Positions 1,857 to 62,234 of a DNA stretch of 64,000 bases are shown piece after piece; position 1 is the stretch's first letter; each line of letters begins with the position of its first letter. Below the pieces are notes generated by a model. It had not been told where the DNA came from, made no database searches, and saw only the letters and a program-made list of their open reading frames with translations. This DNA is from Oopsacas minuta (Eukaryota; Animalia; Porifera): assembly GCA_024704765.1 (NCBI GenBank), contig JAKMXF010000336.1:214207-278206 (forward strand), read 5' to 3'. A program made the translations under genes and the position numbers.

Positions 1857-4800
1857 TCAGTTTATCTGGTATCTCACAGCTTCATCCTGCACACTTCCAG
1901 GATAAACTTCTGCAATAAAGTTTGGATCTTTCTTTTCGATTAGTTCAGATTCTATAGCAGTTGTTTTCTTCAATTCATCAGGCTGTACTGATCCGTGCAT
2001 GTAGTTATAGATTTCATTACTATATCCAGCAGTGGGGATTTTATGGTTGTTCGTGTCTTTTGCTTTGAGTATTCTGCGCATTTTGTTGTTCTTTCTAACA
2101 AAATACAAGAATAAAACGATAAACATGAATATTAGGAAAACATTGGACACTAAAGAGATAATCATGAGAATTACTGTTGGTTGGTACCATTCAAATTGGT
2201 TTTGAGTTGACATGGCTTGTTGCGTAAATGAGGATGTCGGATCTGAAGTTTGATGTGTAGTATTTCCTAGTGTATCAACATTTGGGCAAGAATGATTATA
2301 GATCCTGATGTTGAACCCTCCTTGACAAATGAAACGATTTTCATGATAACTGCCATCTACAACGTCACATTGTATGTTGCTTTCACAATGAGTTTCATTG
2401 ATCAGCTGATGACCATACTCACAATAACATTCAAAAGAACCTATGGTATTTCGACATCCAAACTCACATCCTCCATTCGCTTCTTGACACTCATTGACAT
2501 CATCACAATCATATCTATTTGCTGCTAGCTTGTATCCTTCATCACATAAACAAAGATACGAACCTTCTGTGTTCTCGCAGGTATGCTCACAATTTGTTTT
2601 GTGATTACATTCATCGAAGTCTAGACATTCACCTGAATTGTGCAGTGAATAACCAATAGGACAATTTGTTGGCGGTTCAGTTGGTTCTGAGGGTGATGTT
2701 GGGTCAGGGAAACTATGACAATTCAGATTTGTGATTGTGAGATTGAATCCTCCTTGACAAATGAAAATATTTTCTTGATATCCACTACCATCTATCACGT
2801 CACATTGTATATTTCTTTCACAATGAGTTTCATTGATCAGCTGATGACCATGCTCACAATAACATTCAAATGAACCTATGAAATTTCTACAACCAAACTC
2901 ACAACCTCCATTCCATTCATAACACTCATTTACATCTTCACAATCATATCCATTTTGAGAAACTGTGTATCCTTCATTACATGTGCAGTAGAATGAACCT
3001 ACTGTGTTCTCACAGGCATACTCACAATTCGTTTCCTCATCGCATTCATCAAAATCTTTACATTCACCTGAATTGTGCAGTGAATAACCAATAGGACAGT
3101 TTGTTGGCGATTCAGTTGATTCTGTTGTTGAGGGTGATGTTGGGTCTGGGAAGCTATGGCAAGTCAGATTTGTGATTGTGAGATTGAATCCTCCATGACA
3201 AACGAAGCGATATTCTTCATCACCGCTACTATCTACCACGTCACATTGTATGTTGCTTTCACAATGAGTTTTGTTGATCAGCTGATGACCATCCTGACAA
3301 TAACACAGATATGAACCGATTATATTTTGACATCCAAACTCACATCCTCCATTCCCTTCCTGGCACTCGTTAATATCATCACAAGCATATCCATTAGCAG
3401 CTAAGGTGTATCCTTCATCACATACACAACGATATGAACCTTCTGTGTTCTCACAGGCGTATGCACAATCAGTTGCCTCGTTACACTCATCAAAATCTTT
3501 GCATTCACCAGAGTTGTGCAGTGAATAACCTATTGGGCAAAAGGTTGGTGGTATTGTTGACTGTGCTGTTGAAGTTGTTGACGTTGTAGTTGTAGTGCTT
3601 TGACACGTGAAGTTTGTAATTGTCAGATTGAACCCTCCTTGACAAGTGAAGTGGTTTACTTGATAACTACTACTCTCGACCACGTCACATTGAATGTCGC
3701 TCTCACAATGAGTTTGATTAATCAGCTGATGTCCGTACTCACAATAACACAGATATGAACCTATGGTATTTCTACAACCAAACTCACATCCTCCATTCCA
3801 TTCCTGGCACTCATTAGCATCTTCACAATCATATCCATTAATAGCTAGTTTGTATCCTTCTTCACATATGCAATTATATGAACCTTCTGTGTTCTGACAA
3901 GCATATGAACAATTAGTTACTTCAGTGCACTCATTGAAATCTTTGCATTCACCTGAATTATGCAATGAATAACCAATAGGACAACTAGTTGGTTGTTCTG
4001 TTGAAGGTGTTGTTGGTTCAGTGATGCTTTGACAAGTCAGATTTGTGATAGTTAAGTTGAACCCTCCTTGACAAGTGAAGCGGTTTTCTTGATAACCACT
4101 ACTATCGACCACGTCACATTGAATATCGCTCTCACAATGAGTTTCGTTATACAATCGGTGTCCTTGCTCACAGTAACATTGATATGAACCTATGGTATTC
4201 CCACAACCAAACTCACATCCTCCATTTCCTATCTTACACTCATTCACATCATCACAAACATATCCATTTGCAGCTAGCTTGTATCCTTCATCACACACAC
4301 AATGGTATGAACCTTCTGTATTCTCACAGACATGCTCGCATTCAGTTACTACATCGCATTCATCTTCATCTACACATTCTCCTGAACTATCTTGTTGATA
4401 ACCTACAGGACAACTACAAAGGTAACCATCTTGTGTATTATGACATACTTCATTACTGGGACAGGTTATGGACTTGTCAAAGCATTGATAAGATTCTGTT
4501 TGTGAGCAATTGGTATACAACAGTGGATCAGTAATAGACTTTTGGAAGAAAACGTTTGGTTCAGAACAATATCCATTACTTGTATATACCCCATATTGCG
4601 ATACAATTGACGTCCATTGTAATCTACAGTCGCAGATGAACGGGTCATTTAAATATATATTTATGCTTGGTGATTTCATTTGCTGGAATACATATGAGTC
4701 TAGAGTATGATACTCATTGAACAGTAAATATACATCTCTTAGAGATCTTGTATGTATCAGTGCTTCAATAGGGAATCCTGGATTCTCATCTAATCTCAGT

Positions 4801-5600
4801 TCTGTCAGTTCAGTTAAACCTTCGAATACATTATTTGATATAATCTTTATTCCATTATTTTGAAGATAGAGTCTTGACAGACTTGAGAGTTCACTGAATG
4901 TACCATCCTCAATAATACTTAATTTATTGTTTTCAAAGCTCAAAAGTGTTAACGAGTTCAAACCATCCAATGCTCCTTTAGTTATGCTACTGAAATCCGA
5001 GTTGTAGAAACTTAGGTGAACCAAGTTTGATAATCCTCTAACGATTGTGTTATCAAATGTACGCGTGGACGAACCTACTATTCTAATGTCGAGATAAGTT
5101 AGAAATTGTAGATTTGTGAAATATGGTGATTCTTCTGAGATACAATTACCAATGTAGATAGATTTTAGACCAGTGAAATAATTGAAAAAGTTCCCAGACT
5201 CGAGTTGGATATGATAGGCATTATCTATAACTATCCTCGTTAATCCAGTATTCTGACTTGAGGTAGTTAAACGGATATTATCTTTATCTATACCATTGTA
5301 AATGTACAACGTTTGGATATGTGAGGCTATTTCTATATCGACGATTAGATTCCCGTATACTGTTGATGTGTAGTCTTTGTAGACATATATTGTAAAAAAT
5401 GCTGTGCTCTGAACGCTACAGTAGCTTAACAAACCCTTGATAACCTGAGTTTCATTATTAGTGATGTAGCAATTGAGGTAGGAACTATAAAAATCACAAT
5501 AACCTGCTTCATTAGAGCAACTGGGAGCTTCAACCACTCCATAATAGCACAAATATGTCACCAAACCTAACAACAGAGAGATATTTCCGAACTTCCCCAT
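1857..5600 (-). CDS. Intronless type-I membrane receptor, paralog 1 (1247 aa): signal peptide, LRRs, LRRCT, EGF, 5 cbEGF-pair modules, TM, Tyr-containing tail
   Basis: Single ORF; hydrophobic N-terminus; 24-aa LxxLxLxxN repeats; DPFICDCRLQW LRRCT; D-x-D/N-E-C...NTxGSYxC calcium-binding EGF consensus; Thr/Pro linkers; TM VILMIISLVSNVFLIFMFIVLFLYF. Confidence 0.93.
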   Translation of the reverse strand: MGKFGNISLLLGLVTYLCYYGVVEAPSCSNEAGYCDFYSSYLNCYITNNETQVIKGLLSYCSVQSTAFFTIYVYKDYTSTVYGNLIVDIEIASHIQTLYIYNGIDKDNIRLTTSSQNTGLTRIVIDNAYHIQLESGNFFNYFTGLKSIYIGNCISEESPYFTNLQFLTYLDIRIVGSSTRTFDNTIVRGLSNLVHLSFYNSDFSSITKGALDGLNSLTLLSFENNKLSIIEDGTFSELSSLSRLYLQNNGIKIISNNVFEGLTELTELRLDENPGFPIEALIHTRSLRDVYLLFNEYHTLDSYVFQQMKSPSINIYLNDPFICDCRLQWTSIVSQYGVYTSNGYCSEPNVFFQKSITDPLLYTNCSQTESYQCFDKSITCPSNEVCHNTQDGYLCSCPVGYQQDSSGECVDEDECDVVTECEHVCENTEGSYHCVCDEGYKLAANGYVCDDVNECKIGNGGCEFGCGNTIGSYQCYCEQGHRLYNETHCESDIQCDVVDSSGYQENRFTCQGGFNLTITNLTCQSITEPTTPSTEQPTSCPIGYSLHNSGECKDFNECTEVTNCSYACQNTEGSYNCICEEGYKLAINGYDCEDANECQEWNGGCEFGCRNTIGSYLCYCEYGHQLINQTHCESDIQCDVVESSSYQVNHFTCQGGFNLTITNFTCQSTTTTTSTTSTAQSTIPPTFCPIGYSLHNSGECKDFDECNEATDCAYACENTEGSYRCVCDEGYTLAANGYACDDINECQEGNGGCEFGCQNIIGSYLCYCQDGHQLINKTHCESNIQCDVVDSSGDEEYRFVCHGGFNLTITNLTCHSFPDPTSPSTTESTESPTNCPIGYSLHNSGECKDFDECDEETNCEYACENTVGSFYCTCNEGYTVSQNGYDCEDVNECYEWNGGCEFGCRNFIGSFECYCEHGHQLINETHCERNIQCDVIDGSGYQENIFICQGGFNLTITNLNCHSFPDPTSPSEPTEPPTNCPIGYSLHNSGECLDFDECNHKTNCEHTCENTEGSYLCLCDEGYKLAANRYDCDDVNECQEANGGCEFGCRNTIGSFECYCEYGHQLINETHCESNIQCDVVDGSYHENRFICQGGFNIRIYNHSCPNVDTLGNTTHQTSDPTSSFTQQAMSTQNQFEWYQPTVILMIISLVSNVFLIFMFIVLFLYFVRKNNKMRRILKAKDTNNHKIPTAGYSNEIYNYMHGSVQPDELKKTTAIESELIEKKDPNFIAEVYPGSVQDEAVRYQIN

Positions 5601-5719
5601 GACGAATACTGATCAAATGAAATTACCTGTTGTTCAGCAAATTTGAGCAATGAGTCGGAAAAGTAATAATGAATTGAATATTTGATAACAAACTGACATT
5701 TATACTCATTCCCGGAGCT

Positions 5720-5731: not shown

Positions 5732-6039
5732 TTGTTATTGGCTGGCATATATGGATTGTAGATGATGGAACATATCTATTTCTAGTGTAATTATATATCA
5801 TATACGTATATCTATACTATTAAAACTCAATTCATCTGTGTATATGTCTAGAATTGTTAGAAGAGATTGGAAGACTCCCAGGGCTGATTTTTGGCATACT
5901 GGAGTATTGTGGGCATGGCTTGGACTAGCTCGAGGATTGAACGAAAGTTCACACCTATGACGAAATTATGATATTATCATATATAATCGAGTGTGGATTT
6001 CGCAAATATATGTATTATGCATATACTTCCAAAACAAAT

Positions 6040-7590: not shown

Positions 7591-7880
7591 TTATGATGAA
7601 TGATCTTTATTCAACACATTATTGAATTGTTTATTATCTTGATCATTTCTTTATTTTTTAAAACTTATGTAAATTTATACATTTTCCCGCTCACTTTAAA
7701 TTTGCTCCCGACGCACCTGGTGCTGACCATGAGATTCGAATATAGGATCAATATGTTACTGTCCGACAACAGTGTAATTCCAGGAGTGCACTGCAAATAA
7801 GGCACCTTCCAAGAATGTTTAGATAACCCCAGTTGGGTTTACGTATTAATCGAACAAATATTTAATTTAATAACATCATA

Positions 7881-8213
7881 TTAGCATAGAGATACTACAA
7901 TTGTGTCATTGTATAGATTATGATGATTAATGTAATCACGTACAATGTCAGTTGCAAAGAAGATAAAGCAGGCGAATATCTCAATGAAATTTATCATGAA
8001 TAGCAGGAGATATTTACGAATTTCAGTATCGAAATGGTTAATTAATTGCTGATTCGATTCACCTGATTCTTCATCTGTGATATTTCGAGTTGCAACTCTC
8101 TTATATTTGATATTGCAATGTATTTTGTTAATGAACACTATTGCCCAATAAGCATTCATTACTATGAATATTGATAACTAACCTGTAAATGTAACCACTG
8201 TTAAAGCAAACAT
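7881..8213 (-). pseudogene. Inverted, 3'-truncated paralog of the 7-TM gene at 9625-10749
   Basis: MFALTVVTFTG*LSIFIVMNAYWAIVFINKIHCNIKYK...YNDTIVVSL; TAG at codon 12 (8180-8178); breaks at about 7886 where unit 1 ends. Confidence 0.9.
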
Positions 8214-8755: not shown

Positions 8756-9624
8756 GTTATATTCATTAAGACAATTTCAAAAGTGGAATTGTATTTTACT
8801 TGTTGATTTATGAATATAATGATTCCGTAAAATTCTTAGAGATTTATGGAAATTTTCCCTCTTAACCGACTTCTACCTATTTCAGATTTCGAGTTTTCTC
8901 AGCTAACATGTATAGTAAATAATATTCTAGCTAAAAGTTGTATATCTTAATCACCCTATTGCTCTGAATACAAACCTGGGAGCTTTCTAATTCGTGAGCA
9001 TTTTTTGTCGCGTAAATTTTAACAAAATTCAATTAGAGGCTGTGATAAATATTATTCACAATTCTTGGTGGGATTTCTAGACTCCAGTTTAACAGCCTAG
9101 ATTAACCTCCCCACTTTTTGTAAGAAATAATGTTAGTTCTATGGGGCATGAGTCAGTATAGCCGCCCCACTTTTCATGGGCTTCCATCCTGCCCACCATA
9201 TGTGATGCAAATTTGTTGCATGTAACAAGGGTAATATACATGGTGTAACAATGTTATGTTGTGTTTTCAAGCAACAATTTGTATCGTGAATAGTGGGCTT
9301 TACGAATACATAGATAACACCCACACTTTTTACACATGACATAATAAGGGCAGGGAGTATATTTTGTTCTAGCGCAGATTATACCCGAGTATACTCTGGG
9401 CTGCTACACCGGGTTCGTACCTATACTTATATTATATCCCATTGGATATCTTGAAATTTGATACATAGGTATCTATACACTTTTAAGATGAATATCATTA
9501 AACAAAATATGTAAGATATATGATGTTACAATTAATTAGAGAATTTCTAATTCATTACTTAATTATTGTAAGTCTTGAAGAACTATAAATATTCTAGAAT
9601 TTTGTAATATAGAATATCTTGAAA

Positions 9625-10749
9625 ATGTTTGCAATAACAGCAACAATATTTACTATTTTAATATCATTTTTTGGTGTACTAAATATATATTGGGCAATAG
9701 TGTTCATGAAAAAAATACATTGCAATATCAAATATAAGAAAGTTGCAACTCGAAATATCACAGATGAAGAATCAGGTGAATCGAATCAGCAATCAATTTA
9801 CTACTTCGATACTGAAATTCGTAAATATCTCCTGCTATTCATGATAAATTTCATTGAGATATTCGCCTGCTTTATCTTCTTTGCAACTGACATTGCACGT
9901 GATTACATTAGTCATCATAATCTATACAATGACACAATTGTAGTATCTCTACGCGAATGTACAAGTGCAAACGAATCCATTATGAATCAAATTATCAATC
10001 AACCAATCATATTCCCGTTTCAAAATGGTTTGTTAGCGATAGGAAATTGTGCAGAATTATTTGTTGCGGCATTTGTCATTTGTCTAATGAATCTTCTCAT
10101 TATACGTATAAAGAAAATCAAATACTCGTATATCAAGTTCAATCCTATCATATTTCTTACATTCACTACATTATTGTGCTGTATAATCATCATTACAGGG
10201 TTCATACAAATAATTACCAACATCAGTACATTATTGTTTGCTATTTCAATCTTTCCATATTTCTGGGTATTTGTAAGAACAGCGAATCGATTTAAAAGTG
10301 CCTTGCTTCATAGAGCTATAGAGTGTCTCACACAATACGGATCTAACAAGGAAGAAATGAGACAATACAAAAACTTCAAATACACTATTAATAGTATATC
10401 TTATGGATTCCTGTTGACTATAATAGGAACTTGTTTAGTGCAAATACAATGTGTTTTAGTTACCGAGATTTACTACGCAAAATGCTTCTTTCCACTAAAT
10501 TTTCTCCCTCCGATAAGATTCATGATAGACTCACCTGAAAATACTGAGAGATTTTTAAAATTCTTATTAATCCAACAGACAATTGGCTTGATTTTTATTG
10601 CCATTGGAATATTATTATGGTTATCACCATTTATTGCCGTCACAATATACATTTGGATCAAACAAATCTATCAATATTTTCACAAAACTCCAAAGGAAAA
10701 GTATACCACAGTAGTCTCTACTCTGGGTGATTCATTGTTAAATGATTAG
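9625..10749 (+). CDS. Intronless orphan 7-TM membrane protein A (374 aa from the ATG at 9625)
   Basis: Intact ORF with seven hydrophobic segments by inspection and no canonical rhodopsin motifs. The ORF track starts at TTG 9619; the first ATG is 9625. Confidence 0.85.
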   Translation: MFAITATIFTILISFFGVLNIYWAIVFMKKIHCNIKYKKVATRNITDEESGESNQQSIYYFDTEIRKYLLLFMINFIEIFACFIFFATDIARDYISHHNLYNDTIVVSLRECTSANESIMNQIINQPIIFPFQNGLLAIGNCAELFVAAFVICLMNLLIIRIKKIKYSYIKFNPIIFLTFTTLLCCIIIITGFIQIITNISTLLFAISIFPYFWVFVRTANRFKSALLHRAIECLTQYGSNKEEMRQYKNFKYTINSISYGFLLTIIGTCLVQIQCVLVTEIYYAKCFFPLNFLPPIRFMIDSPENTERFLKFLLIQQTIGLIFIAIGILLWLSPFIAVTIYIWIKQIYQYFHKTPKEKYTTVVSTLGDSLLND

Positions 10750-15300: not shown

Positions 15301-18300
15301 TCGGGAAAATGCCTTGTCATACTCTGTGTATCAACTTGAAAAAGCAAGAATTTCATTGAGTATAGAGAAAGAACAATTAACTTCGGAAATATGTTTCTAC
15401 CAAAAGGCATTATCAACTTCATCCAATTAGTTTAATAATTATATCGTACATATATTTCTGTTATTTTCATATTTACTCACCCTGCTGGACAGGTTTATTG
15501 AGTTATTTGCATGTTTTTCCTTTTATTAAACAATTCCTGCACCTTTAACTATGTTTACACTATTGACCTCATCAACTGGGGCCTATTTAGATATACTTTC
15601 GAGGTTTCCTTTCTGGCCAAGTAACCTGATAATTGACATATATTTAGTGGAACTTCATTAGTACGAACACATTTAATACGAATTTCGGAACAATAGAACA
15701 AATATTTACACAAATTCAGGTCCCTACAATAGTTATTCAAGTGATATTGCTCCTGTCAAGAAGTACTAAATTTAAAGGTCCACTCGTGTACGTATTACAG
15801 AGGTTCTACTGAATCAGGTCATTTCTGGTATATCTCGAGTATCTGTTTGAATTTCACATGGATTTATTTATGAGGGGAATTCCCTGAATGAAATGTCAGT
15901 TCACTGCTGTCACGAAAAGTATTGTAATCTAATTTCTTATTCATACAAAGTATAATATTGAATTTACACAATTAACAAATACAGTGAACCTTCAGTAAGT
16001 GAACACCCCGGGGGCCAGCCAAAGTGTTCACATACGAGAGGTGTTCTCTTTTCGTGACATCGTGCGTAGCAATGGAAAAAATTTGGGACCGAGAAAAGGT
16101 GTTTATCTTTTCGAGGTTTTACTGTATTTACAGTGAGTAACACCAACTTACATTTTACATGGCATCAGTAATTACAGTATCCCATAGATAACAGTATAAC
16201 CTCAAATTCCTAGTTTCATACACATGAGCCTATACAAAAGGGAATTGGGTAGACAGAGAGAATCGGAGTCGCATCTTTTGGCCTTCCTGGCACCCCATTT
16301 ACATTTCTCGGGAGTCCTGATATTTATATCGATATCCCCGATTTTCATAAATTTCCCTGCATTTCTAATTTTATTCGCAAATAATATGAATTTTCACTAT
16401 TTTGTCCGCTGCGAGAAATATCCAATATTTTTGAATGTACAAAATATCCCTGATATAATCTAAAACCCGGGACAATCCACGGATCCAGGGAAGGTTGGAA
16501 AGTGTACGTTTGTGAGGTTGCACTGCAGTAGCTCCCATTGAGGGCGATCACAACTTGATAATCGCCCCGAGAAAATCTCAAACATTTCGTTACGCTATTC
16601 CCTCTCTTATCTAGGCTACCAGCACTTGTGGATTAACAGGTTCAGAAACATACTGTAGGTTTCTAGGTCCTTCTCAACCTGATTCAGTATCTCTTGCTCC
16701 TGAATGTAATATTGATAACTGTGATAATACATGTCCTCATGGAAATACCTCTCCAACTCCCATTATGATTGAAATAGGTAAGTGTGTATGTTAGACGTCA
16801 CAAGCACGGCACAGGTCGTTCGGGCTTCTGGCTGTCTGGCCGGGTCAGGGGTAGTCCCAAGATCTGGCATTCCTGCGACAAATGCCTCGTCAGGCCTGGG
16901 GTTAGAGTAATATGTGATTGTAATTGTAATAGTAACGATTACAATTTGAAAGGTAATTGTAATATTGCAATTGATCTTATTGTGCAGCAATATTTAACTG
17001 TTCCAGCTTCTCAGCTCCAGTAGAGAGACTTTTAGTATAGCTGGTTAATTCTTTCGAACTGATAGGTGTTCCCTAAGCCTAAGTGATGAGGTATTTCAGA
17101 AACTCATCACTGTCAAATCCAATGCGGGTTTATAAAAACTGATTTGAGTTTTTGCATACAAAATCTATCATTTTGTATTAACACTCGTCAAATCCAAACG
17201 TGACAGCTTTTCACTAATCCGAACGAATTATCTTGCAATTTCTGTTCGGATTAGCGAAGGTATACTATATATTGTATGTACAATTTAACCATATATTATT
17301 ATTCCACGAGGCTCAATATTACAAACAGACACGCCTGCTCCAGGACAATCAGGAACCTCTCTGATGTTTTCTGGTGAATCAGATAGTTTTATATCTCATA
17401 GTAATATACCTGTTATAGATGATAATACAGGTTTCTCATTCTCTTCATGGTTTAGAGTTGATTCTGGGAATATTAATGGGTAATTTAATTGTTGGGAATA
17501 TTATATTGTATGTTGTATGTATGTATGTATGTATGTATGTATGTATGTATGTATGTATGTATGTATGTATGTATGTATGTATGTATGTATGTATGTATGT
17601 ATGTATGTATGTATGTATGTATGTATGTATGTATGTATGTATGTATGTATGTATGTATGTATTGTATGTATGTATGTATGTATGTATGTATGTATGTATG
17701 TATGTATGTATGTATGTATTGTGTATGTATGTATGTATGTATGTATGTATGTATGTATGTATGTATGTATGTATGTATGTATGTATGTATGTATGTATGT
17801 ATGTATGTATGTATGTATGTTTGTTTGTTTGTTTGTTTATTTGTTTGTTTTTATGTGTGCTTGCTCGCTTGCTTGCTTGCTTGTTTAGCATTTACTTGTC
17901 GTATGTTGACTGTTGTTTTTTTGTTGGTTTGACTGTTATCTATGTTTGTTATTCTCCCAATTTCCCTAATATTTGTATCTACAGAATAATTATATCACGA
18001 GGAAATGATGACATAGATTCAGAGGAAATATTCCACATACGCGTTTCTGGCACATCTCTATACATTTCCTATATCCCATTAACCAGTAATACAGCTTCAG
18101 AAATTCAAATTCCATCTTTCGTTATCGTATCCAACGTATGGTATCATATATCTGTAGCAATATACCAAGAGGACGTATCTGTATATGTGAATGGAGCTAT
18201 ACAGTATGCTACGTCACTTATTGCTGATATTAAGGGACCTGCTGGTGTATTGTATCTGGGAAGAGGTGTTGATGGTGAGCAAACACGACCCGTTCAAGCG

Positions 18301-41532: not shown

Positions 41533-41833
41533 ACACTGAGTTATATATGTATACCGCATAACTTCTAAGCCTAATACCTGAATGAACCTCAGGTAAGAGA
41601 CCTTCCATATAGCCGCGCCAGTTATAACCAGAGTGGACCGATTATGGCCGCTCAGTTATGGATGTCACTACTGGTGCAGTAAGAGTTGTGGCCTTTTCAA
41701 AAGATTTTATCAATATTTTATAGTTTCTGAATGTGAGAATGATTTGATATACCGAATGAATATTCTATACTTTACAATACATATACACATTAAAGTATGT
41801 ATAAAGCCATCTACCGAAGTTGATGACGAAACA

Positions 41834-45100: not shown

Positions 45101-45564
45101 GAAATACAATAACCCAAGTAGATATATTTTAGACCTGTGAAGTAATTGAAAAAGTTTTTAGCCTCGAGCTGGATATGATAGCTACTACTAACAGATATCC
45201 TCGTTAATCCAGTATTTTGGCTAGATGTAGTTAGACGGATATTATCTCGATCTTCGTAATTGTAAATGCGTAAATATTGGATATTTGAGGCTAATTCTAT
45301 ATCAATGATTAGGTTCCCGTATACTGTTGATACGTAGTTTTTGTAGACATATATTGTAGAAAATACTGTACTCTGACCGCTACAGTAGCTTAACAAACTC
45401 TTGATGACCTGAGTTTCATTATTAGTGATGTAGCACTGTAGATAGCTACTACCATAATTACAATACCCTGCTCCATTAGAGCAATCGACAGCTTCAACCA
45501 CTCCATAATAATACAAATATGTCACCAAACCTAACAACAGGCATATATTACCGAACTTCCCCAT
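42193..45564 (-). CDS. LRR-cbEGF type-I receptor, paralog 2 (1123 aa): one extra 24-aa LRR, 4 EGF modules
   Basis: Intact ORF; tandem NNKLSIIEDGTFNELSSL / NNKLGIIEDGTFNELSSL LRR duplication; same architecture as 1857-5600. Confidence 0.93.
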   Translation of the reverse strand: MGKFGNICLLLGLVTYLYYYGVVEAVDCSNGAGYCNYGSSYLQCYITNNETQVIKSLLSYCSGQSTVFSTIYVYKNYVSTVYGNLIIDIELASNIQYLRIYNYEDRDNIRLTTSSQNTGLTRISVSSSYHIQLEAKNFFNYFTGLKYIYLGYCISKETPSFTNLQYLSSLSVRIVGASTRTFDNTIVRELSNLVYLNFYNSDFSSITKGALDGLNSLTYLSFANNKLSIIEDGTFNELSSLLSLYLQNNKLGIIEDGTFNELSSLLQLYLQNNGIKIISNNVFEGLTELTYLNLDENPGFPIEALINTRSLRYVLLQYNEYHTLDPYVFQQMKSPSSIYLYLSDPFICDCRLQWTSMVSQYGVYISNGYCSEPNVFFQKSITDPLLYANCSQTESYQCFDKLITCPSNQVCHNTQDSYLCGCPIGYLQHSSGECVDEDECDVVTECEHTCENTEGSYHCVCDEGYKLAANGYVCDDVNECKVGNGGCEFGCGNTIGSYQCYCEQGHQLYNETHCESDIQCDVVDSSGYQENRFTCQGGFNLTITNLTCHSITEPTTPSTEQPTSCPIGYSLHNSGECKDFDECDEVTNCTYACQNTEGSYSCICEEGYKLAINGYDCEEANECQEWNGGCEFGCRNTIGSYLCYCEYGHQLINQTHCESDIQCDVVDSSGHQENRFTCQGGFNLTITNLTCQSITKQTTPSTEQPTSCPIGYSLHNSGECKDFNECTEVTNCSYACQNTEGSYNCICEEGYKLAINGYDCEDANECQEWNGGCEFGCRNTIGSYLCYCEYGHQLINQTHCESDIQCDVIDSSNNEEYQFICDGGFNLTITNFTCQSTAITMPKTSTAQSTIPPTFCPIGYSLHNSGECKDFDECNEATDCAYACENTEGSYRCACDEGYTVAANGYACDDINECQEGNGGCEFGCQNIIGSYLCYCQDGHQLINKTHCESNIQCDVVDSSYHENRFICQGGFNITIQNFSCPNVDTLGNTTHQTSDPTSSFTPRAMSTQNQFEWYQPTVILMVISLVSNVFLIFMFIALFLYFVRKVNKLQGIPKAKDTNNHRIPTAGYSNEIYNSIHGSAQPDELKKTTAIESELIEKKDPNLIAEVYPGSVQDEAVRYQIN

Positions 45565-49639: not shown

Positions 49640-51382
49640 TCAGTTTATCTGCACACTTCCAGGATAAACTTCTGAAATAAGGTTGGAATCTTTCTTTTCG
49701 ATTAGTTCAGATTCTTTAACAGTTGTTTTCTTCAATTCATCAGGTTGTACTGATCCGTGCATGCAGTTATAGATTTTATTACTATATCCAGCAGTGGGGA
49801 TTCTATGGTTTTTCGGGTCTTTTGCTTTGAGAATCCCTTGTAGTTTGTTAACCTTTATAACAAAATACAAGAATAATGCTATAAACATGAATATTAGGAA
49901 AACATTAGACACTAAAGAGATAATCATGAGAATTACTGTTAGTTGTCCTTGCTCACAGTAACACAGATATGAACCTATTGTATTGCCACAACCAAACTCA
50001 CATCCTCCATTTCCTATCATACACTCATTGACATCATCACAAACATATCCATTTGCAGCTAGCTTGTATCCTTCTTCGCACACACAATGGTATGAACCTT
50101 CTGTGTTGACACAGGTATGCTCGCATTCAGTTTCCTCATCACATTCATCGAAGTCTCTACATTCTCCTGAAACATATAGTAGATAACCTACAGGACAACC
50201 ACAATAGTAATCATCTTCTGCATTATGACATACTTGATTACTAGGACAGGTTGTGGACTTGTCAAAGCATTGATATGATTCTGTTTGTGAGCAATTTGTA
50301 TACAGCTGTGGATTACTAATATCTTTGTTGAGGAAATTGTTTGGTTCAGAACAAATACCATTGTATATATTTATCCCATATTGAGATACAATTGACGTCC
50401 ATTGTAATCTACAATCGCAGACGAAAGGGTCGTTTAAATATATGCTGGTTAGTGATTTCATTTGCTGGAATACATATGGGTCTAGAGTATGATAATCATT
50501 GTACTGTAAGTATACAGATTCAAGAGATCTTGTGTGTATCAGTGCTTCAATAGGGAATCCTGGATTCTCATCTAATCTCAGTTCTGTCAGTTCAGTTAAA
50601 CCTTCGAAAACATTATTTGATATACTCTTTATTCCATTATTTTGAAGATAGAGTTCTAACAGACTTGAGAGTTCACTGAATGTACCATCCTCAATACTAC
50701 TTAATTTATTGTTTTCAAAGCTCAGAAGAGTTAACGAGTTCAAACCATCCAATGCTCCTTTAGTTATGTTGCTGATACCCGAGTTTGGGAAACTTAGCAA
50801 AGTCAGGTTAGATAATCCTCTAACGATTGTATTATCAAATGTACGCGTGGACGAACCGATTATTCTAACATAGAGATAAAGTAGATATTGTAGATTTGTG
50901 AAAGATGGCGTTTCTTTTGAAATAACATAACCCATCAAGATAGATTTTAGACCTGTGAAGTAATTGAAAAAGTTTTTAGACTCAAGCTGGATATGATCGT
51001 TACCAACATATATGTGCAATAAGCCAGTATTTTGACTAGATGTAGTTAAACGGATATTGTCTTGATCTTCGTCATTCTTAAGGTACAATCGTTGGATATT
51101 TGAGGCTAATTCTATATCAATGATTAGATTCCCGTATACTGTTGATACGTAGTATTTGTAGACATATATTGATACAAATGCTGTGTTCTGACCGCTACAG
51201 TAGCTTAACAAACTCCTGATGACCTGAGTTTCACTATTGGTGATGTAGCAACTGAGGGAGGAACTAGTATAATCACAATACCCTGCTCCATTGGAGCAAT
51301 CGACAGCTTCAACCACTGCATAATAATACAAATAAGTCACCAAACCTAACAGCAGACATATATTTCCGAACTTCCCCATCAC
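49640..51382 (-). CDS. LRR-cbEGF receptor, paralog 3 (580 aa), stalk removed by an in-frame deletion
   Basis: Intact ORF; the last EGF ends CYCEQGQ and joins directly to LTVILMIISL (TM); tail GSVQIN lacks DEAVRYQ. Confidence 0.88.
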   Translation of the reverse strand: MMGKFGNICLLLGLVTYLYYYAVVEAVDCSNGAGYCDYTSSSLSCYITNSETQVIRSLLSYCSGQNTAFVSIYVYKYYVSTVYGNLIIDIELASNIQRLYLKNDEDQDNIRLTTSSQNTGLLHIYVGNDHIQLESKNFFNYFTGLKSILMGYVISKETPSFTNLQYLLYLYVRIIGSSTRTFDNTIVRGLSNLTLLSFPNSGISNITKGALDGLNSLTLLSFENNKLSSIEDGTFSELSSLLELYLQNNGIKSISNNVFEGLTELTELRLDENPGFPIEALIHTRSLESVYLQYNDYHTLDPYVFQQMKSLTSIYLNDPFVCDCRLQWTSIVSQYGINIYNGICSEPNNFLNKDISNPQLYTNCSQTESYQCFDKSTTCPSNQVCHNAEDDYYCGCPVGYLLYVSGECRDFDECDEETECEHTCVNTEGSYHCVCEEGYKLAANGYVCDDVNECMIGNGGCEFGCGNTIGSYLCYCEQGQLTVILMIISLVSNVFLIFMFIALFLYFVIKVNKLQGILKAKDPKNHRIPTAGYSNKIYNCMHGSVQPDELKKTTVKESELIEKKDSNLISEVYPGSVQIN

Positions 51383-53790: not shown

Positions 53791-53827
53791 TAGTTTCATT
53801 TGAATGTTATTGTGAGTATGGTCATCA
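53788..53827 (+). other. 40-bp piece of a receptor EGF repeat, inverted relative to the receptor genes, at a rearrangement junction
   Basis: CCATAGTTTCATTTGAATGTTATTGTGAGTATGGTCATCA vs receptor sense-strand (C)CATAGGTTC(A/T)TTTGAATGTTATTGTGAGTATGG(T/A)CATCA (e.g. 2410-2449, 59035-59074); 1-2 mismatches. Confidence 0.8.
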
Positions 53828-54639
53828 CTTCTAGCTTAACTTCGTGTACTTTGAAACAAAGTATTTTAGAAATTGATGCTATAGGGGACGACACCCCATT
53901 TTGGTACCTGTATTTAACCACCCTTCTGAAAATAATCTGTCAACTGTTTCTGATTTTACTCTCATTCTTAACACAGTATCTCTCGAAGAGATATTTCCTT
54001 CATTCTTTAAGGAAAACTAGCATTGCTCATTTCACTCTTGCAATGATACAAATCTCCATCATTGTCTGTCTAACTAATAGAGATACAATAATTCTGTACC
54101 TCTTGATTGTACCGCTACTGGTATTCATGGATTGGTGCATTTTAGTCAGAAACAGTAAAATCCTATATCGAGTACTTAAATCAAATGTAAGAGATTTGAA
54201 GTTGAATCTATCAAATCGATATTTGTACATAGAGCAATGGAGACTGCTTCGAATATACAAAATACTGATGCCTGTACTATTAACCGCGTTATTCTTCGGG
54301 TTTTGCACAATTTTTCTTCGTTTTTATTTCAAGTTATCTTTCGCATTTTTGATATCAAATTGTTTTGACATAATGTTAAGAGACACATTCACAGTTACTC
54401 GAGTCAATGGTCTACACAGAATAATTTTCTACTTTCAATGTGCATCTGAATACCTAATGCTTATTTGTATGACAATCCACTTCATATTACTTGGTTTCCC
54501 AATATTGGCTATTTCAATTGGAATGCTATATACAGCTTGTGTAAATAGGTGGGGCAAGAAGAAAAAGAATTTTTACAGATTTGACTATACTAACTTCAAG
54601 GAAACTTTGCTTAAGTTAAACCTGAGAGCTCCGTATTGA
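53828..54639 (+). pseudogene. 5'-truncated 7TM-B duplicate (TM3-TM7 in an open frame)
   Basis: Homology to 7TM-B begins at TSSLTSC (38821); TM1-2 and the start codon are missing; the ORF-track start at 53800 lies in the inserted EGF piece. Confidence 0.88.
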
Positions 54640-55456
54640 TAATTTATGTGTATATTTTCAATTGTCTAATATTTAACTGTATTGTTGATTTCATGAATAT
54701 ATGCAAACAAATTATCCGAATCTCTAAATAAAGATAGAGAATTGCTCTCAACAGTCTTATAAGGTAATTTAGTACGCTAAATCTGAATTTCGCATTTCTA
54801 ATTTTCTCATATGTAAATTTATTGTTGTTTTTCGAACAAATAATTGAAACCTTGAATAATCGTAGAAACTTGCTCTCAACAGATATATAGGGGTAATAAA
54901 TAACCCTGAGTCCGGTGCCTTAAGGAAAAATCGCGTCGGCACAGATGGTGATTTGAATTTTCCTTTTGTATATCACAGACTTTCAACCTTGTTTTAATGC
55001 CAAATTAGCTGTATAGTTATTGACATCTCGTAATTCGTTAATGCTAGACACAGGGAATCTATTATTTTCGTATAAGAAGTCATATTTTGGGAGTTCAATG
55101 TTCATATTAGTTTACCGGAAATATTTGCGGAATCTATGTTATGCGATATTCACACTTTCCATAAATGTTATTACAGTGACTCATTCTGTGCACCCCCTGC
55201 TGTCATCCTTGGACCACCAAGAGGTCCATAGATCCCAGTTTGGGAACTGATGAACCAGATCTTCCCTGGAAGTGTTTGAATTATGTCTGTGTACTACAAA
55301 TGAATTACATTGTACATTAAATAATAAAAAACTGTGAAACTGTATGTATAGTCAAAAATGCGTGAGAAAAGAGGAAAACCCACGACAATCCTGTCTAGAT
55401 TACAACATCATAAGAATTATGCGTAAATATCTCAGTAATAATATGTGTATTATTTA

Positions 55457-55709
55457 TCAATATAGCGATCTCAAGTTGGCTTCATTCATAGCTTCCTTAC
55501 AGTTATCATAGTTAAATTCGTAATGATTCTTCTTAGTCCACCTCTTTACACAAGCTGAATATAGAATTCCAATTGAGATACCGAACATTGGAAATTCAAG
55601 CAAGAAGAAGTGGATTGTAATGCAAATTATCAGTAAATATTCTGACGCAACTTCCAAGTCTAAAATTATTGTGAATATATTCTTGTATTCTGTGTTTGAG
55701 TGTGTACTT
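55457..55709 (-). pseudogene. Convergent 7TM-B paralog C-terminal fragment, second copy
   Basis: EVASEYLLIICITIHFFLLEFPMFGISIGILYSACVKRW...NLRSLY*. Confidence 0.85.
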
Positions 55710-56520
55710 CACTGGCGGCCATATGGGGTGTACAGGCTGTGCGGTACACAGGGGCCCCCAAAGAGATCATTTGGAAGGAGAGGAGATTAACCGAGATTTT
55801 TGGGGAATGGTTGGGCCCACAAAATCCCAGGGCAACCTTATTCTGGGTTGAGTATAGTTAATTGTCTAGTTGATCTATGTATTCATGAAGTTTGAAATTA
55901 CATTAGTCAATAAACATAGGATATGACTATCACTAGAATTTATATTTCCTTGAATTGGTTTTAATTTAGACATTTTTCCTCTTAGATCGTTAATTTATTA
56001 GTTATTCATCTCTTGTACACATAGATTATATAGAAATATAGTTTCACAAACATTACATCGTATTTCCGTGTATTATTAAGATATCTGTCACGAAAGTTCT
56101 AATCAGTTATACTACAGGAGAAACTTATGCAGGGGCGGATCCAAGGGGCGTCCTAGGGGTCCTAGGACCCCTCCTCGGTGTTCCTAGCGAGAATCGAAAT
56201 GGAACCAAAATTTGAGTTTTGACTTTCTGTCTAAAAATTAATGAATAATTTGATAATTGAATTTACATATATTTCTCTATATGTGGTAGAAATGTCTTTA
56301 GATCGCTATTTCAGTGTCGAAATATTCAAAAAAAATTCTGGGGGCACCCCTTAGGATAGCTCGCTGCGCTCCTGCTTGGACTCCCCCTAGATAAATCCTG
56401 GATCCGCTCCATGTTATGCATGTGCCATGTGCATAATTTTGCCTCTTTTTTTTTATAATTGAGAAGGGGCCCCAAGAAAACCATTGCACAAGGGCCCCCA
56501 ATATCCTATGGCCGCCACTG
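55710..56520. mobile_element. Duplicate of the hAT-like composite element (nested element at 56130-56413)
   Basis: CACTGGCGGCCATA ... TATGGCCGCCACTG. Confidence 0.8.
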
Positions 56521-56665
56521 ACAATGAGTTATATATGTATACCGCATAACTTCTAAGCCTAATAACTGAATGAACCTCAAGTAAGAGACCTTCCATATAC
56601 CTAGCCCAGTTATGACCAGAGTGGACCGATTATGGCCGGCCAGTTATGCATGTCACTACTGGTGC

Positions 56666-57486
56666 CAGTGGCGGCGCTAGGAATTTCTTTAAGAAGGGCG
56701 GTCAAAGTGGTTGCCAATACATAGGGATCTAATTGTTTACTAATTCACGCCTAGGGTGTAGAGTAATTCATCCACTCACATTTTGGATTGAGAGGATACT
56801 CTTTAGGAATATTGTATCAGTGCTAGACTGTCTACATATTATAGTTATCAAAAAATTGAACTCAAGTAGGTTTATGTGTAATAGGAACTGTGACAAATAC
56901 TTAAGTTTTTCGACCTTTCCTTTGCTTGTCCTGTTTTGATAAGGCCAATCAAAACCAATGCTGGACACAAACGCGTTGTTAAGCAGATTCAGTCTATCAT
57001 GATCGGATAACTCGGCAGTTTTTCCAATGACAGTTCCAATGTCATTCGTGGTTGCACTTCCATCAGTCATCGTTAGGGTTGTGATTTTTGTGGCTACCAT
57101 TTTGGTAATTTCTGTTTCTGCAGTCTCAGGGTTGGTGATTTGATGCCTACAGGCTGTGGATCGTAAAAGTCACGAAGTTTGCGCTTCATCGCATAATAAT
57201 TCTTCTAATGGCAACGAACAAAACTGGTTGAATTGATTGTTATAATAATATATACAGGACTACTTTGTTATTTTTACTCGCTTATAGTAAGTCTTCAACA
57301 ATAACATGAAAGGCTATAGTAATATGTTGTTATTCATTAAATACAATTGTTTACAAATCCCGGATAGAGGGCTTCATTTGACCCAACAGTAGTAAGTCTA
57401 AAATCAAATCTTTGGGATATTTTCTGTGACGGGAGGGGGGGGGCGATCGCACGTTCGCCCCATCCCCCCCCCGTCCGCCGCCACTG
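56666..57486 (-). mobile_element. 821-bp hAT deletion derivative with perfect 8-bp TSD; unit-4-specific insertion
   Basis: ACTGGTGC|CAGTGGCGGCG ... CGCCGCCACTG|ACTGGTGC; empty sites ACTGGTGC at about 41669 and 49078. Internal ORF 56768-57100 (NDIG..LSDHDRLNLL..F....FDWP) and a downstream EWMNYS resemble the N-terminus of ZMYM1-like/TTF-zinc-finger hAT transposases (by eye only). Confidence 0.9.
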
Positions 57487-58046: not shown

Positions 58047-61000
58047 TCAGTTTATCTGGTATCTCACAGCTTCGTCCTGCACACTTCCAGGATAAACTTC
58101 TGCAATAAGGTTTGGATCTTTCTTTTCGATTAGTTCAGATTCTTTAGTAATTGTTTTCTTCAATTCATCAGGCTGTGCTGATCCGTGAATGCTGTTATAG
58201 ATTTCATTACTATATCCAACTCTGGGGATTCTATGGTTGTTCGTGTCTTTTGCTTTGAGTATTCTGTGCATTTTGTTGTTCTTTCTAACAAAATACAAGA
58301 ATAATGCTATAAACATGAATATTAGGAAAACATTGGACACTAAAGAGATAATCATGAGAATTACTGTTGGTTGGTACCATTCAAATTGGTTTTGAGTTGA
58401 CATGACTTGTTGCGTAAATGAGGATGTCGGATCTGAAGTTTGATGTGTAGTATTTCCTAGTATATCAACATTGGGGAAAGAATGATTATAGATCGTGATG
58501 TTGAACCCTCCTTGACAAATGAATCGATTTTCATGATAACTGCTATCTACAACGTCACATTGTATGTTGCTTTCGCAATGAGTTTCATTGATCAACTGAT
58601 GACCATACTCACAATAACATTCAAAAGAACCTATGATATTTCTACAACCAAATTCACAACCTCCATTCGCTTCTTGACACTCATTGACATCATCACAATC
58701 ATATCCATTAGCTGCTAGCTTGTATCCTTCATCGCATACACAAAGATACGAACCTTCTGTGTTCTCACAGCTATGCTCACAATTCGTTTCCTCATCGCAT
58801 TCATCGAAATCTTTGCATTCACCTGAATTGTGTAGTGAATAACCAATAGGACAGTTTGTTGGCGATTCAGTTGATTCTGAGTGTGATGTTGGGTCAGGAA
58901 AGCTATGACAAGTCAGATTTGTGATTATGAGACTGAATCCTCCTTGACAAATGAAACGATTTTCTTGATATCCACTACCATCTACCACGTCACATTGTAT
59001 GTTGCTCTCACAGTGAGTTTCATTTATCAGCTGATGTCCATACTCACAATAACATTCAAATGAACCTATGGTATTTCTACAACCAAATTCACAACCTCCA
59101 TTCCATTCCTTACACTCATTTGTGTCTTCACAATCATAACCATTAGTAGACACTGTGTATCCTTCATTACATAAGCAATAGTACGAACCTTCTGAGTTCT
59201 CACAGGAATGCTCACAATTCGTTTCCTCATCGCATTCATCCACATCTTTGCATTCACCTGAATTGTGTAGTGAATAACCAATAGGACAGTTTGTTGGCGA
59301 TTCAGTTGATTCTGTTGTTGAGGGTGATGTTGGGTTAGGGAAGCCATGGCAAGTCAGATTTGTGATTGTAAGATTGAATCCTCCATGACAAACGAAGCGA
59401 TATTCTTCATCACCGCTTCTATCTACCACGTCACATTGTATGTTGCTTTCACAGTGAGTTTCATTTATCAGCTGATGTCCATACTCACAATAACATTCAA
59501 ATGAACCTATGGTATTTCTACAACCAAATTCACAACCTCCATTCCATTCCTTACACTCATTTGTGTCTTCACAATCATAACCATTAGTAGACACTGTGTA
59601 TCCTTCATTACATAAGCAATAGTACGAACCTTCTGAGTTCTCACAGGAATGCTCACAATTCGTTTCCTCATCGCATTCATCCACATCTTTGCATTCACCT
59701 GAATTGTGTAGTGAATAACCAATAGGACAGTTTGTTGGCGATTCAGTTGATTCTGTTGTTGAGGGTGATGTTGGGTTAGGGAAGCCATGGCAAGTCAGAT
59801 TTGTGATTGTAAGATTGAATCCTCCATGACAAACGAAGCGATATTCTTCATCACCGCTTCTATCTACCACGTCACATTGTATGTTGCTTTCACAATGAGT
59901 TTTGTTGATCAGCTGATGACCATCCTGACAATAACACAGATATGAACCGATTATATTTTGACATCCAAACTCACATCCTCCATTCCCTTCCTGGCACTCG
60001 TTGATATCATCACAAGCATATCCATTAGCAGCTAAGGTGTATCCTTCATCACATACACAAAGATATGAACCTTCTGTGTTCTCACAGGCATATGCACAAT
60101 CAGTTGCCTCGTTACACTCATCAAAGTCTTTGCATTCACCAGAGTTGTGCAGTGAATAACCTATCGGACAAAATGTTGGTGGTATTGTTGACTGTGCTGT
60201 TGAAGTTGTTGACGTTGTTATTGTAGTGCTTTGACACGTGAAGTTTGTAATTGTGAGATTGAACCCACCATCACAAACGAATCGATATTCTTCATAGTTG
60301 CTACTATCAGCCACGTCACATTTTATGCTCCTCTCACAATGGGTTTTATTAATCAGCTGAGATCCGTACTCACAGTAACACAGATATGAACCTATGGTAT
60401 TTCTACAGCCAAACTCACATCCTCCATTCCATTCATGGCACTCATTAGCATCTTCACAATCATATCCATTAATAGCTAGTTTGTATCCTTCTTCACATAT
60501 GCAATTATATGAACCTTCTGTGTTCTGACAAGCATATGAACAATTAGTTACTTCAGTGCACTCATTGAAATCTTTGCATTCACCTGAATTATGCAATGAA
60601 TAACCAATGGGACAACTAGTTGGTTGTTCTGTTGAAGGTATTGTTGGTTCTGTGATGCTATGACAAGTCAGATTTGTGATAGTAAGGTTGAACCCTCCTT
60701 GACAAGTGAAGCGGTTTTCTTGATAACCACTACTATCGACCACGTCACATTGAATATCGCTCTCACAATGAGTTTCGTTATACAATCGGTGTCCTTGCTC
60801 ACAGTAACATTGATATGAACCTATGGTATTACCACAACCAAACTCACATCCTCCATTTCCTATCTTACACTCATTCACATCATCACAAACATATCCATTT
60901 GCAGCTAGCTTGTATCCTTCATCACATACACAATGGTATGAACCTTGTGTGTTGACACAGGTATGCTCGCATTCAGTTTCCTCATCACATTCATCGAAAT

Positions 61001-62234
61001 CTCTACATTCTCCTGAATTGTGCAGTGAATATCCTTTTGGACAACTACAAAGGTAGCCATTTTGTGTATTATGGCATACTTCATTACTGGGACAGGTTAT
61101 AGACTTGTCAAAGCATTGATAAGATTCTGTTTGTGTACAATTTGTATACAACAGTGGATTAGTAATAGAATTTTGGAAGAAAATGCTTGGTTCAGAACAA
61201 TATCCATTTCTTATATATACCCCATATTGCGAGACAATTGACGTCCATTGTAATCTACAGTCGCAGATGAACGGGTCATTTACATATATATATATGCTAG
61301 TTTGTGATTTCAATTGCTGGAATACATATGGGTCTAGAGTATGATAATCATTGTATCGTAAGTATACATACCTTAGAGATCTTGTATTTATCAGTGCTTC
61401 AATAGGGAATCCTGGATTCTCTTCTAAATTCAGGTATGTCAGTTCAGTTAAACCTTCGAAAACATTATTTGATATGATCTTTATTCCATTATTTTGAAGA
61501 TGGAGTTGTAACATGCTTGAGAGTTCATTGAATGTACCATCCTCAATAATGCTTAATTTATTGTTTTGGAAGCTCAGATATGTTAACGAGTTCAAACCAT
61601 CCAATGCTCCTTTAGTTATGCTAGTGAAATCTGAGTTATAGAACCTTAGGTAAACCAAGTTTGATAATCCTCTAGCGATTGTATTATCAAATGTACGCGT
61701 GGACGAACCGATTATTCTAGCGTAGAGATAAGTTAGATATTGTAGATTTGTAAAAGATGGTGTTTCTTTTGTAATACAATAACCCGTGTAGATAGATTTT
61801 AGACCAGTGAAGTAATTGAAAAAGTTACCAGACTCGAGCTGGAAATGATAGTTACTGCTAAGATATATTCTCGTTAATCCAGTATTTTGACTAGATGTAG
61901 TTAAACGGATATTGTCTTGATCTCTGGAATTGTAAATGTATAGATATTGGATATTTGAGGCTAATTCTATATCAATGATTAGATTCCCGTATACTGTTGA
62001 TACGTAGTATTTGTACACATATATTGTTACAAATGCTGTGCTCTGACCACTACAGTAGCTTATCAAACTCTTGGCAACCTGAGTTTCATTATTGGTGATG
62101 TAGCACCGTAGATAGTTACTATAATAATCACAATACCCTGCTCCATTAGAGCAATCGACAGCTTCAACCACTGCATAATAATACAAATATGTCACCAAAC
62201 CTAACAGCAAACATATATTACCGAACTTCCCCAT
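58047..62234 (-). CDS. LRR-cbEGF type-I receptor, paralog 4 (1395 aa): 6 EGF modules
   Basis: Intact ORF, same architecture; modules 4 and 5 identical. Confidence 0.93.
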   Translation of the reverse strand: MGKFGNICLLLGLVTYLYYYAVVEAVDCSNGAGYCDYYSNYLRCYITNNETQVAKSLISYCSGQSTAFVTIYVYKYYVSTVYGNLIIDIELASNIQYLYIYNSRDQDNIRLTTSSQNTGLTRIYLSSNYHFQLESGNFFNYFTGLKSIYTGYCITKETPSFTNLQYLTYLYARIIGSSTRTFDNTIARGLSNLVYLRFYNSDFTSITKGALDGLNSLTYLSFQNNKLSIIEDGTFNELSSMLQLHLQNNGIKIISNNVFEGLTELTYLNLEENPGFPIEALINTRSLRYVYLRYNDYHTLDPYVFQQLKSQTSIYIYVNDPFICDCRLQWTSIVSQYGVYIRNGYCSEPSIFFQNSITNPLLYTNCTQTESYQCFDKSITCPSNEVCHNTQNGYLCSCPKGYSLHNSGECRDFDECDEETECEHTCVNTQGSYHCVCDEGYKLAANGYVCDDVNECKIGNGGCEFGCGNTIGSYQCYCEQGHRLYNETHCESDIQCDVVDSSGYQENRFTCQGGFNLTITNLTCHSITEPTIPSTEQPTSCPIGYSLHNSGECKDFNECTEVTNCSYACQNTEGSYNCICEEGYKLAINGYDCEDANECHEWNGGCEFGCRNTIGSYLCYCEYGSQLINKTHCERSIKCDVADSSNYEEYRFVCDGGFNLTITNFTCQSTTITTSTTSTAQSTIPPTFCPIGYSLHNSGECKDFDECNEATDCAYACENTEGSYLCVCDEGYTLAANGYACDDINECQEGNGGCEFGCQNIIGSYLCYCQDGHQLINKTHCESNIQCDVVDRSGDEEYRFVCHGGFNLTITNLTCHGFPNPTSPSTTESTESPTNCPIGYSLHNSGECKDVDECDEETNCEHSCENSEGSYYCLCNEGYTVSTNGYDCEDTNECKEWNGGCEFGCRNTIGSFECYCEYGHQLINETHCESNIQCDVVDRSGDEEYRFVCHGGFNLTITNLTCHGFPNPTSPSTTESTESPTNCPIGYSLHNSGECKDVDECDEETNCEHSCENSEGSYYCLCNEGYTVSTNGYDCEDTNECKEWNGGCEFGCRNTIGSFECYCEYGHQLINETHCESNIQCDVVDGSGYQENRFICQGGFSLIITNLTCHSFPDPTSHSESTESPTNCPIGYSLHNSGECKDFDECDEETNCEHSCENTEGSYLCVCDEGYKLAANGYDCDDVNECQEANGGCEFGCRNIIGSFECYCEYGHQLINETHCESNIQCDVVDSSYHENRFICQGGFNITIYNHSFPNVDILGNTTHQTSDPTSSFTQQVMSTQNQFEWYQPTVILMIISLVSNVFLIFMFIALFLYFVRKNNKMHRILKAKDTNNHRIPRVGYSNEIYNSIHGSAQPDELKKTITKESELIEKKDPNLIAEVYPGSVQDEAVRYQIN
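59008..59894. repeat. Apparently perfect 441-bp tandem duplication (one 147-aa module) in paralog 4
   Basis: 59008-59453 matches 59449-59894 with no mismatch seen; identical ORF-track peptides at 59066 and 59507 are offset by 441. Confidence 0.92.

Follow-up and report, generated by a model that had tools for sequence, protein, structure and literature searches.

Mosaic histories along the genes of a clustered LRR-cbEGF receptor family in the glass sponge Oopsacas minuta

The variable lymphocyte receptors (VLRs) of lampreys and hagfish gain new concave surfaces when leucine-rich repeat (LRR) cassettes are recombined by gene-conversion-like copying, an assembly that is somatic and begins from an incomplete germline gene flanked by banks of cassettes. 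Gene conversion between tandem Toll-like receptor paralogs is described for mammalian TLR1 and TLR6 (PMC2077338), and a study of the coffee SH3 NBS-LRR cluster relates plant resistance (R) gene evolution to gene conversion, unequal crossing-over and the formation of chimeric genes (PMC3113787). Here, we analyze four LRR-EGF receptor genes, P1 to P4, in the final 64 kb of the 278,206-bp contig C336 of the glass sponge Oopsacas minuta (C336:214207-278206; G+C content of about 35%), a stretch referred to below as the window. The four genes are mosaics of one another, with all three possible pairings occurring along their length, and it is probable that short-tract gene conversion between paralogs, together with unequal crossover, shuffled receptor DNA across the whole family.

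The four genes in the window are the following.

1857-5600, reverse strand: P1, 1247 aa, intronless, encoding an LRR domain, an EGF domain, five modules (each of two cbEGF domains, a small Cys domain and an S/T/P linker), a transmembrane (TM) helix and a tail (open reading frame (ORF), Pfam, module dissection).
42193-45564, reverse strand: P2, 1123 aa, intronless paralog with 4 modules (ORF, Pfam, alignment, module dissection).
49640-51379, reverse strand: P3, 579 aa, intronless paralog (ORF, alignment); the listed ORF opens with a GTG at 51382, one codon before the ATG at 51379.
58047-62234, reverse strand: P4, 1395 aa, intronless paralog with 6 modules (ORF, module dissection).

Each of the four is complete, reading from signal peptide to stop codon in one ORF. 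Pfam matches in the receptors are to LRR_8, LRR_4, EGF_CA, cEGF and FXa_inhibition, many of them of EGF type, and a hydrophobic N-terminus and a 27-residue hydrophobic stretch followed by Arg/Lys can be read by eye from the translations. The products are predicted to be surface proteins that span the membrane once, with an N-terminal LRR domain closed by a Cys-rich cap, a cbEGF stalk, a TM helix and a cytoplasmic tail. The tail, of about 105 aa, gives no Pfam match, TIR included, at E <= 0.01. The tails (1857-2180 in P1 and the equivalents in P2 to P4) conserve Tyr motifs, IYNSI and RYQIN among them, and that of P3 is without the final DEAVRYQ. Existing protein annotation of the family reads only 'fibrillin-like' or 'hypothetical'. 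The duplicated unit exceeds the coding sequence (CDS), as homology among the four genes extends for 1.8-2.3 kb into the 5′ flank and for about 530 bp into the 3′ flank. P1 to P4 are members of a clustered family of at least 11 close paralogs in O. minuta (assembly of 61.46 Mb in 365 contigs), where a whole-genome search finds at least seven further close paralogs at 84-88% DNA identity.

C336:206100-208961, reverse strand: P0, a further paralog just before the window.
C336:180777-190130, forward strand: Q1 to Q3, further paralogs inverted relative to P0 to P4.
End of contig C340: R1 to R3, further paralogs.

The interval from the Q genes to P0 contains a fragmentary extra paralog (C336:192770-194406). 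C336 stops 1766 bp upstream of P4, and C340 stops 5.6 kb past R3 (C340:218325-223910); since the assembly breaks in or beside both receptor clusters, the array may be longer, or C336 and C340 may join.

The sponge genes resemble TLR1 and TLR6 in being tandem paralogs with LRR ectodomains whose adjoining segments have different histories, apparently through interlocus gene conversion, and in having some segments homogenised while the putative ligand-binding parts stay divergent. They differ from that pair in carrying a stalk of cbEGF modules and no TIR or other Pfam domain in the tail, and in forming a family of at least 11 copies that lie in either orientation and have numerous short tracts where that pair has a single conserved stretch. 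Membership of the Toll-like receptors was rejected on the lack of a TIR domain, and that of Slit on domain content. As in plant LRR clusters, paralogs exchange sequence, the number of repeats varies and exposed LRR residues are under positive selection, whereas the sponge family consists of extracellular LRR-EGF membrane proteins without an NBS or kinase domain. Unlike VLR genes, the sponge copies are complete in the germline, with nothing pointing to somatic change; a somatic assembly locus of VLR type was rejected on this completeness. That clustered receptor genes undergo gene conversion and unequal crossover is textbook knowledge; the novelty lies in the family that carries these processes. 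This large intronless receptor family is undescribed: literature searches found no paper on it or on gene conversion in hexactinellids, and the term LRR is absent from the Oopsacas genome paper (PMC10280926).

How the four receptors pair with one another is dependent on which part of the protein is compared, as the first-pass annotation of this sequence had noticed. In the protein alignment, the LRR core groups them (1,3)/(2,4), where P1 and P3 read LTLLSFEN, TFSEL, LTELRLDEN and LIHTRSL and P2 and P4 read LTYLSF.N, TFNEL, LTYLNL.EN and LINTRSL. The first cbEGF groups them (1,2)/(3,4), with P1 and P2 carrying VDEDECDVVTEC and P3 and P4 carrying RDFDECDEETEC, while the juxtamembrane segment groups them (1,4)/(2,3), reading KNNKM.RI in P1 and P4 and KVNKLQGI in P2 and P3. 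We aligned the DNA of the four genes over the 5′ flank, the N-terminal CDS (through the first cbEGF pair), the C-terminal CDS (from the TM helix) and the 3′ flank, which yields 159 two-by-two sites, 76 of them (1,2)/(3,4), 33 (1,3)/(2,4) and 50 (1,4)/(2,3). A single tree would yield one dominant pattern and two rare, scattered ones; the observed patterns run in blocks, and the genes are thus mosaic. Adjacent sites have the same pattern in 109 of 158 cases, against 57.9 +/- 5.7 after shuffling (permutation, p <= 1e-5), and within the N-terminal CDS alone in 36 of 57 cases (20.6 +/- 3.5 expected, p = 3e-5). Runs extend to 37 consecutive (1,2)/(3,4) sites upstream, 10 consecutive (1,3)/(2,4) sites in the LRR core and 11 consecutive (1,2)/(3,4) sites in the first cbEGF. 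Penalised segmentation, from which the 3′ flank alignment past about 540 nt was excluded as non-homologous for most pairs, places at least 3 breakpoints among the four genes and recovers the blocks in the order first described, with (1,2)/(3,4) from the upstream flank to nt 61, (1,3)/(2,4) over nt 117-935, (1,2)/(3,4) over nt 959-1352 and (1,4)/(2,3) in the C-terminus and 3′ flank. The three blocks that typify the pairings, all on the reverse strand, are located as follows.

P1 4737-4946, P2 44629-44910, P3 50519-50728, P4 61371-61580: LRR-core block, (1,3)/(2,4).
P1 4323-4393, P2 44212-44282, P3 50108-50178, P4 60954-61024: first cbEGF block, (1,2)/(3,4), with the 11 consecutive sites.
P1 2070-2090, P2 42406-42426, P3 49832-49852, P4 58260-58280: juxtamembrane micro-tract, (1,4)/(2,3), with 9 differences in 21 nt.

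The three-pairing mosaic among P1 to P4 is therefore confirmed. A simple duplication tree is insufficient to account for it, as had been argued from the protein sequences, because the incompatible sites are spatially clustered and the trees of different segments conflict.

The first-pass annotation had allowed that trees might become congruent along the gene once more paralogs were added. Instead, the seven added paralogs strengthen the incongruence, with the PHI test giving z values of -4.7 for 4 genes, -10.9 for 5 and -22.4 for 11. In the eleven-gene codon alignment (P0 to P4, Q1 to Q3 and R1 to R3), the closest relative of each gene switches every 100-300 nt and often lies outside P1 to P4. 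P4 and R1 are 96-97% identical over nt 241-480, P3 and Q3 98% over nt 241-360, P2 and P4 99% over nt 841-960, and P0 and P3 95-99% over nt 961-1260; per 120-nt window, the best pairwise identity is 92-100% and the top pair keeps changing. Zero-mismatch runs that are globally significant by permutation in a GENECONV-style test join Q2 and Q3 (142 nt), P0 and P3 (128 nt), Q3 and R3 (122 nt) and Q3 and P3 (104 nt), the last being a pair in inverted orientation. Maximum likelihood trees of six segments, compared by approximately unbiased (AU) tests whose p-values are descriptive only, support a (P2,P4) clade over nt 701-960 (95/89) that is rejected over nt 1261-1536 (p-AU 8e-5), and a {P0,P1,P2,R2} clade over nt 1261-1536 (100/99) that is rejected in three other segments (p ~2e-4). 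The (Q3,P0) clade is supported over nt 701-960 (100/99) and rejected elsewhere, and (P0,P3) is supported over nt 961-1260 (100/100). Moreover, the motif VDEDEC is also present in P0 and R2, and the LTELRL/LIHTRSL type also in Q2, so the pairings among P1 to P4 are slices of family-wide sequence classes and the donors need not be among these four genes. What had been proposed as exchange among four receptors thus stands as far as the mosaic is concerned, and gives way to a family-wide exchange network as regards the partners. It also follows that trees of this receptor family are meaningless unless built per segment.

Mosaic structure is not confined to coding sequence, as illustrated by two non-coding tracts upstream of the receptors.

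P1 5758-6587 and P2 45738-46563, reverse strand: upstream tract, 98.6% identical over about 830 bp.
P1 7450-7829 and P3 53219-53598, reverse strand: distal upstream tract, about 97% identical, pairing gene 1 with gene 3.

The P3 and P4 copies of the upstream tract are 88% and 86% identical, and over the CDS start that adjoins it, P1 and P2 reach only about 85% identity. In a whole-genome search, the P1-P2 upstream tract has only four copies (100, 98, 88 and 86% identity), and with just these four the exchange partners are P1 and P2 themselves. A dispersed repeat of about 140 bp, with at least 40 genome copies at about 80% identity on many contigs, lies within the upstream tract at 5834-5971. 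The 98.6% identity of the P1 and P2 tracts, which are 40 kb apart, bears out the earlier suggestion that exchange reaches across the gene between them.

17400-37650 (limits approximate), forward strand: usherin-like gene, multi-exon, between P1 and P2 to P4 (ORFs, Pfam); its exon ORFs, scanned singly, match laminin EGF, FN3 and 2 LamG domains in Pfam.

Silent sites vary in the same manner. In module C of P0, P1, P2 and P4, synonymous divergence (dS) is 0.02-0.12, around one third of the level elsewhere (0.2-0.3 in the N-terminal region and modules A and D), and divergence changes 3- to 10-fold between adjoining segments of one pair. In a cross-class PHI test, purely synonymous sites are much more compatible with informative sites no further off than 30-150 nt than with distant ones (z ~-4.7, p <= 2e-4).

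The EGF stalk bears a further kind of mosaic. Each module of about 147 aa (441 nt) comprises a cbEGF pair, or head, and a small Cys domain with an S/T/P linker, or tail; heads and tails sort into types A to E, and several modules join a head and a tail of different types. P0 has 3 full modules, P1 5, P2 4 and P4 6, while P3 has only a truncated first module, its second cbEGF running directly into the TM helix through an in-frame deletion (junction 49937-49951). Module 1 of P0 combines head A with tail B, module 2 of P2 head B with tail A (an out-of-register duplicate), module 4 of P2 head C with the terminal tail, and module 4 of P4 head D with tail C. P4 also contains an internal 441-nt tandem duplicate with 1 mismatch (58980-59453 and 59421-59894), and P2 one additional LRR (44809-44880). 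Repeat copy number is variable, and in the hybrid repeats an out-of-register join falls at a conserved boundary; these chimeras, duplicates and deletions are footprints of out-of-register recombination or slippage.

The view that gene conversion or unequal crossover shuffles segments of these genes is upheld by the PHI tests, the identical runs, the conflicting trees, the collapse of silent and non-coding divergence and the chimeric modules. From these patterns we infer the molecular mechanism, and any direction of transfer, as follows. Non-allelic (interlocus) gene conversion would copy tracts of about 20 bp to about 800 bp between genes separated by 5-90 kb, whether in the same or in opposite orientation, and probably across two contigs, leaving each gene a patchwork of its nearest relatives. 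Such conversion would homogenise EGF modules B and C and the P1/P2 promoter, and in the LRR domain would recombine variable cassettes. Unequal crossover or slippage within the 441-nt module array would in addition alter the number of modules and create hybrid ones.

Unequal crossover at the origin of each copy, through birth and death with no later conversion, could by itself have produced mosaics in a tandem family whose four window genes carry the same 5′ and 3′ flanking unit, whose module array has clear out-of-register events and many of whose coding tracts are old (94-97% identity). We consider this unlikely, as one unequal crossover leaves one junction, whereas here numerous short blocks of 20-300 nt link each gene to many different partners. 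Exchange also joins genes in opposite orientation (Q3 with P3 and with P0) and genes on the other contig (Q3 with R3, P4 with R1), and crossover of inverted copies would invert the interval rather than yield hybrids. The 3- to 10-fold shifts in divergence between adjoining segments of one pair likewise do not fit a history of hybrid birth alone.

Slightly less probable again is an origin of the mosaics in the assembly. The O. minuta genome was built from Illumina and corrected PacBio reads by SPAdes in hybrid mode (k up to 99), with SSPACE, Pilon and GapFiller applied afterwards (PMC10280926), and wrong de Bruijn paths, bulge collapse or polishing by Pilon and GapFiller with mis-mapped reads could have scrambled genes that in truth fit one duplication tree. 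Both receptor clusters lie at contig ends, and exact repeats of 173-446 nt occur in the module arrays and of 118 nt in the P1/P2 upstream tract. Module number, module order and the phasing of N-terminus to tail are vulnerable because repeats of 173-446 nt are crossed; the (1,4)/(2,3) tail pairing and the N-terminal pairings are connected across long exact repeats of this kind, the least secure part of the assembly, and gene models in the receptor cluster require long-read validation. Within the N-terminal regions of P1, P2 and P4, however, the longest exact stretch in common with other examined copies is 95, 74 and 95 nt, respectively, and in all four C-terminal regions 49-75 nt. With all of these stretches shorter than k = 99, assembler behaviour would suggest that the graph path is not switched within the regions concerned, and those regions alone give significant blocks and all three pairings. 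Path switching would merely relabel segments, leaving the swing of best identity between 92 and 100% unexplained, and most tracts are 94-98% rather than 100% identical, a misfit with polishing or collapse. Furthermore, the assembly of a second species gives the same signal: contig ctg27681 of ENA ERZ25069837, from another organism, holds eight tandem homologues with 52-59% protein identity to the Oopsacas genes, for which PHI gives z -4.3 (p <= 2e-4), although the four-gene quartet test there is not significant (p = 0.15) and the signal needed eight genes. In the ctg27681 array, the homologues number at least eight, are intronless and carry 1-4 EGF modules each; small ankyrin-repeat ORFs are scattered between them, and one homologue is split into overlapping ORFs (15732-17192 and 17189-18538 of the examined stretch).

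Amino-acid convergence without recombination, in which parallel selected substitutions at a few variable positions mimic common blocks, is disfavoured as very improbable: 47 of 59 informative coding sites among the four genes fall in amino-acid-changing codons, synonymous-only codons alone have no PHI signal and the LRR face is under positive selection (omega 1.54), but the non-coding flanks fall into blocks as well (the 37 consecutive (1,2)/(3,4) sites and the 98.6% tract), silent sites and the sites near them have a common local genealogy in the cross-class PHI, silent divergence in module C is collapsed, and nine linked differences in 21 nt cannot arise twice independently.

Family-wide conversion with unequal crossover must also be weighed against several results that count against it. 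It is drawn from the one existing O. minuta genome assembly, a hybrid, scaffolded and polished build from possibly pooled individuals, and a search for independent Oopsacas reads or transcripts with a 161-aa fragment spanning the P2 junction matched only distant ENA relatives, a result that also favours an assembly artefact. No zero-mismatch coding run within P1 to P4 is significant in the GENECONV-style global test, indicating that the coding tracts of these four genes are not very recent. The AU p-values are descriptive because the clades were named after the trees had been seen. Synonymous-only tests give no signal, either in a runs test (12 sites, four genes) or by PHI (45 sites, eleven genes), where codons with an invariant amino acid alone reach z -1.1, not significant. 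These tests are too sparse to decide, and were replaced by the cross-class PHI and by counts of silent differences in pair-by-window cells picked on low nonsynonymous difference. In those cells, silent differences are 15-20% below expectation (p 0.006-0.057), a modest drop that suggests that many coding tracts may be old, or that amino-acid blocks are partly kept by selection.

The receptors have other neighbors in the window. Three orphan ORFs beside them encode multi-pass membrane proteins without a Pfam match.

9619-10749, forward strand: multi-pass membrane ORF.
38484-39631, forward strand: multi-pass membrane ORF.
53800-54639, forward strand: multi-pass membrane ORF.

The segments 38820-41680 and 53827-56669 are 94% identical, above the adjoining 3′ flanks of P2 and P4 (about 79%), and this step near P2 and P4 is a further change of history at the unit boundary. 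A 271-bp inverted repeat, 96% identical (7880-8150 and 9688-9958), lies between the P1 upstream flank and the start of a multi-pass ORF. In the usherin-like region, a microsatellite of about 390 bp of (TATG/TGTA)n type (17499-17887) gives spurious ORFs on both strands.

The variation that conversion would shuffle is concentrated on one face of the LRR domain. Across all eleven paralogs, a mean of 3.0 distinct residues occurs at the x positions of the LxxLxLxxN beta-strand, versus 1.64 in the rest of the repeat (p 2e-9), and pooled omega is 1.54 at these positions versus 0.39 elsewhere in the LRR domain, with dS equal between the two. Tracts of 100-300 nt span one to four LRRs, so conversion would recombine variable cassettes of the predicted binding face. 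That shuffling yields new binding surfaces and specificities, as the first-pass annotation supposed, is plausible and consistent with the contrast in omega. More tentatively, it is possible that glass sponges keep a germline system of cassette shuffling, in which pervasive conversion of short tracts among dozens of LRR-cbEGF genes in clusters, combined with positive selection on the concave face of the LRR domain, supplies ever-new recognition surfaces. If this were true, such surfaces could function in self/non-self or microbe recognition in a syncytial animal, and plant R-gene clusters would have an evolutionary analogue near the root of the animal tree. With its patchwork genes, accordion-like EGF stalks and omega above 1 on the predicted face, the family is a candidate recognition system that would evolve fast in a syncytial animal of an early-branching lineage.

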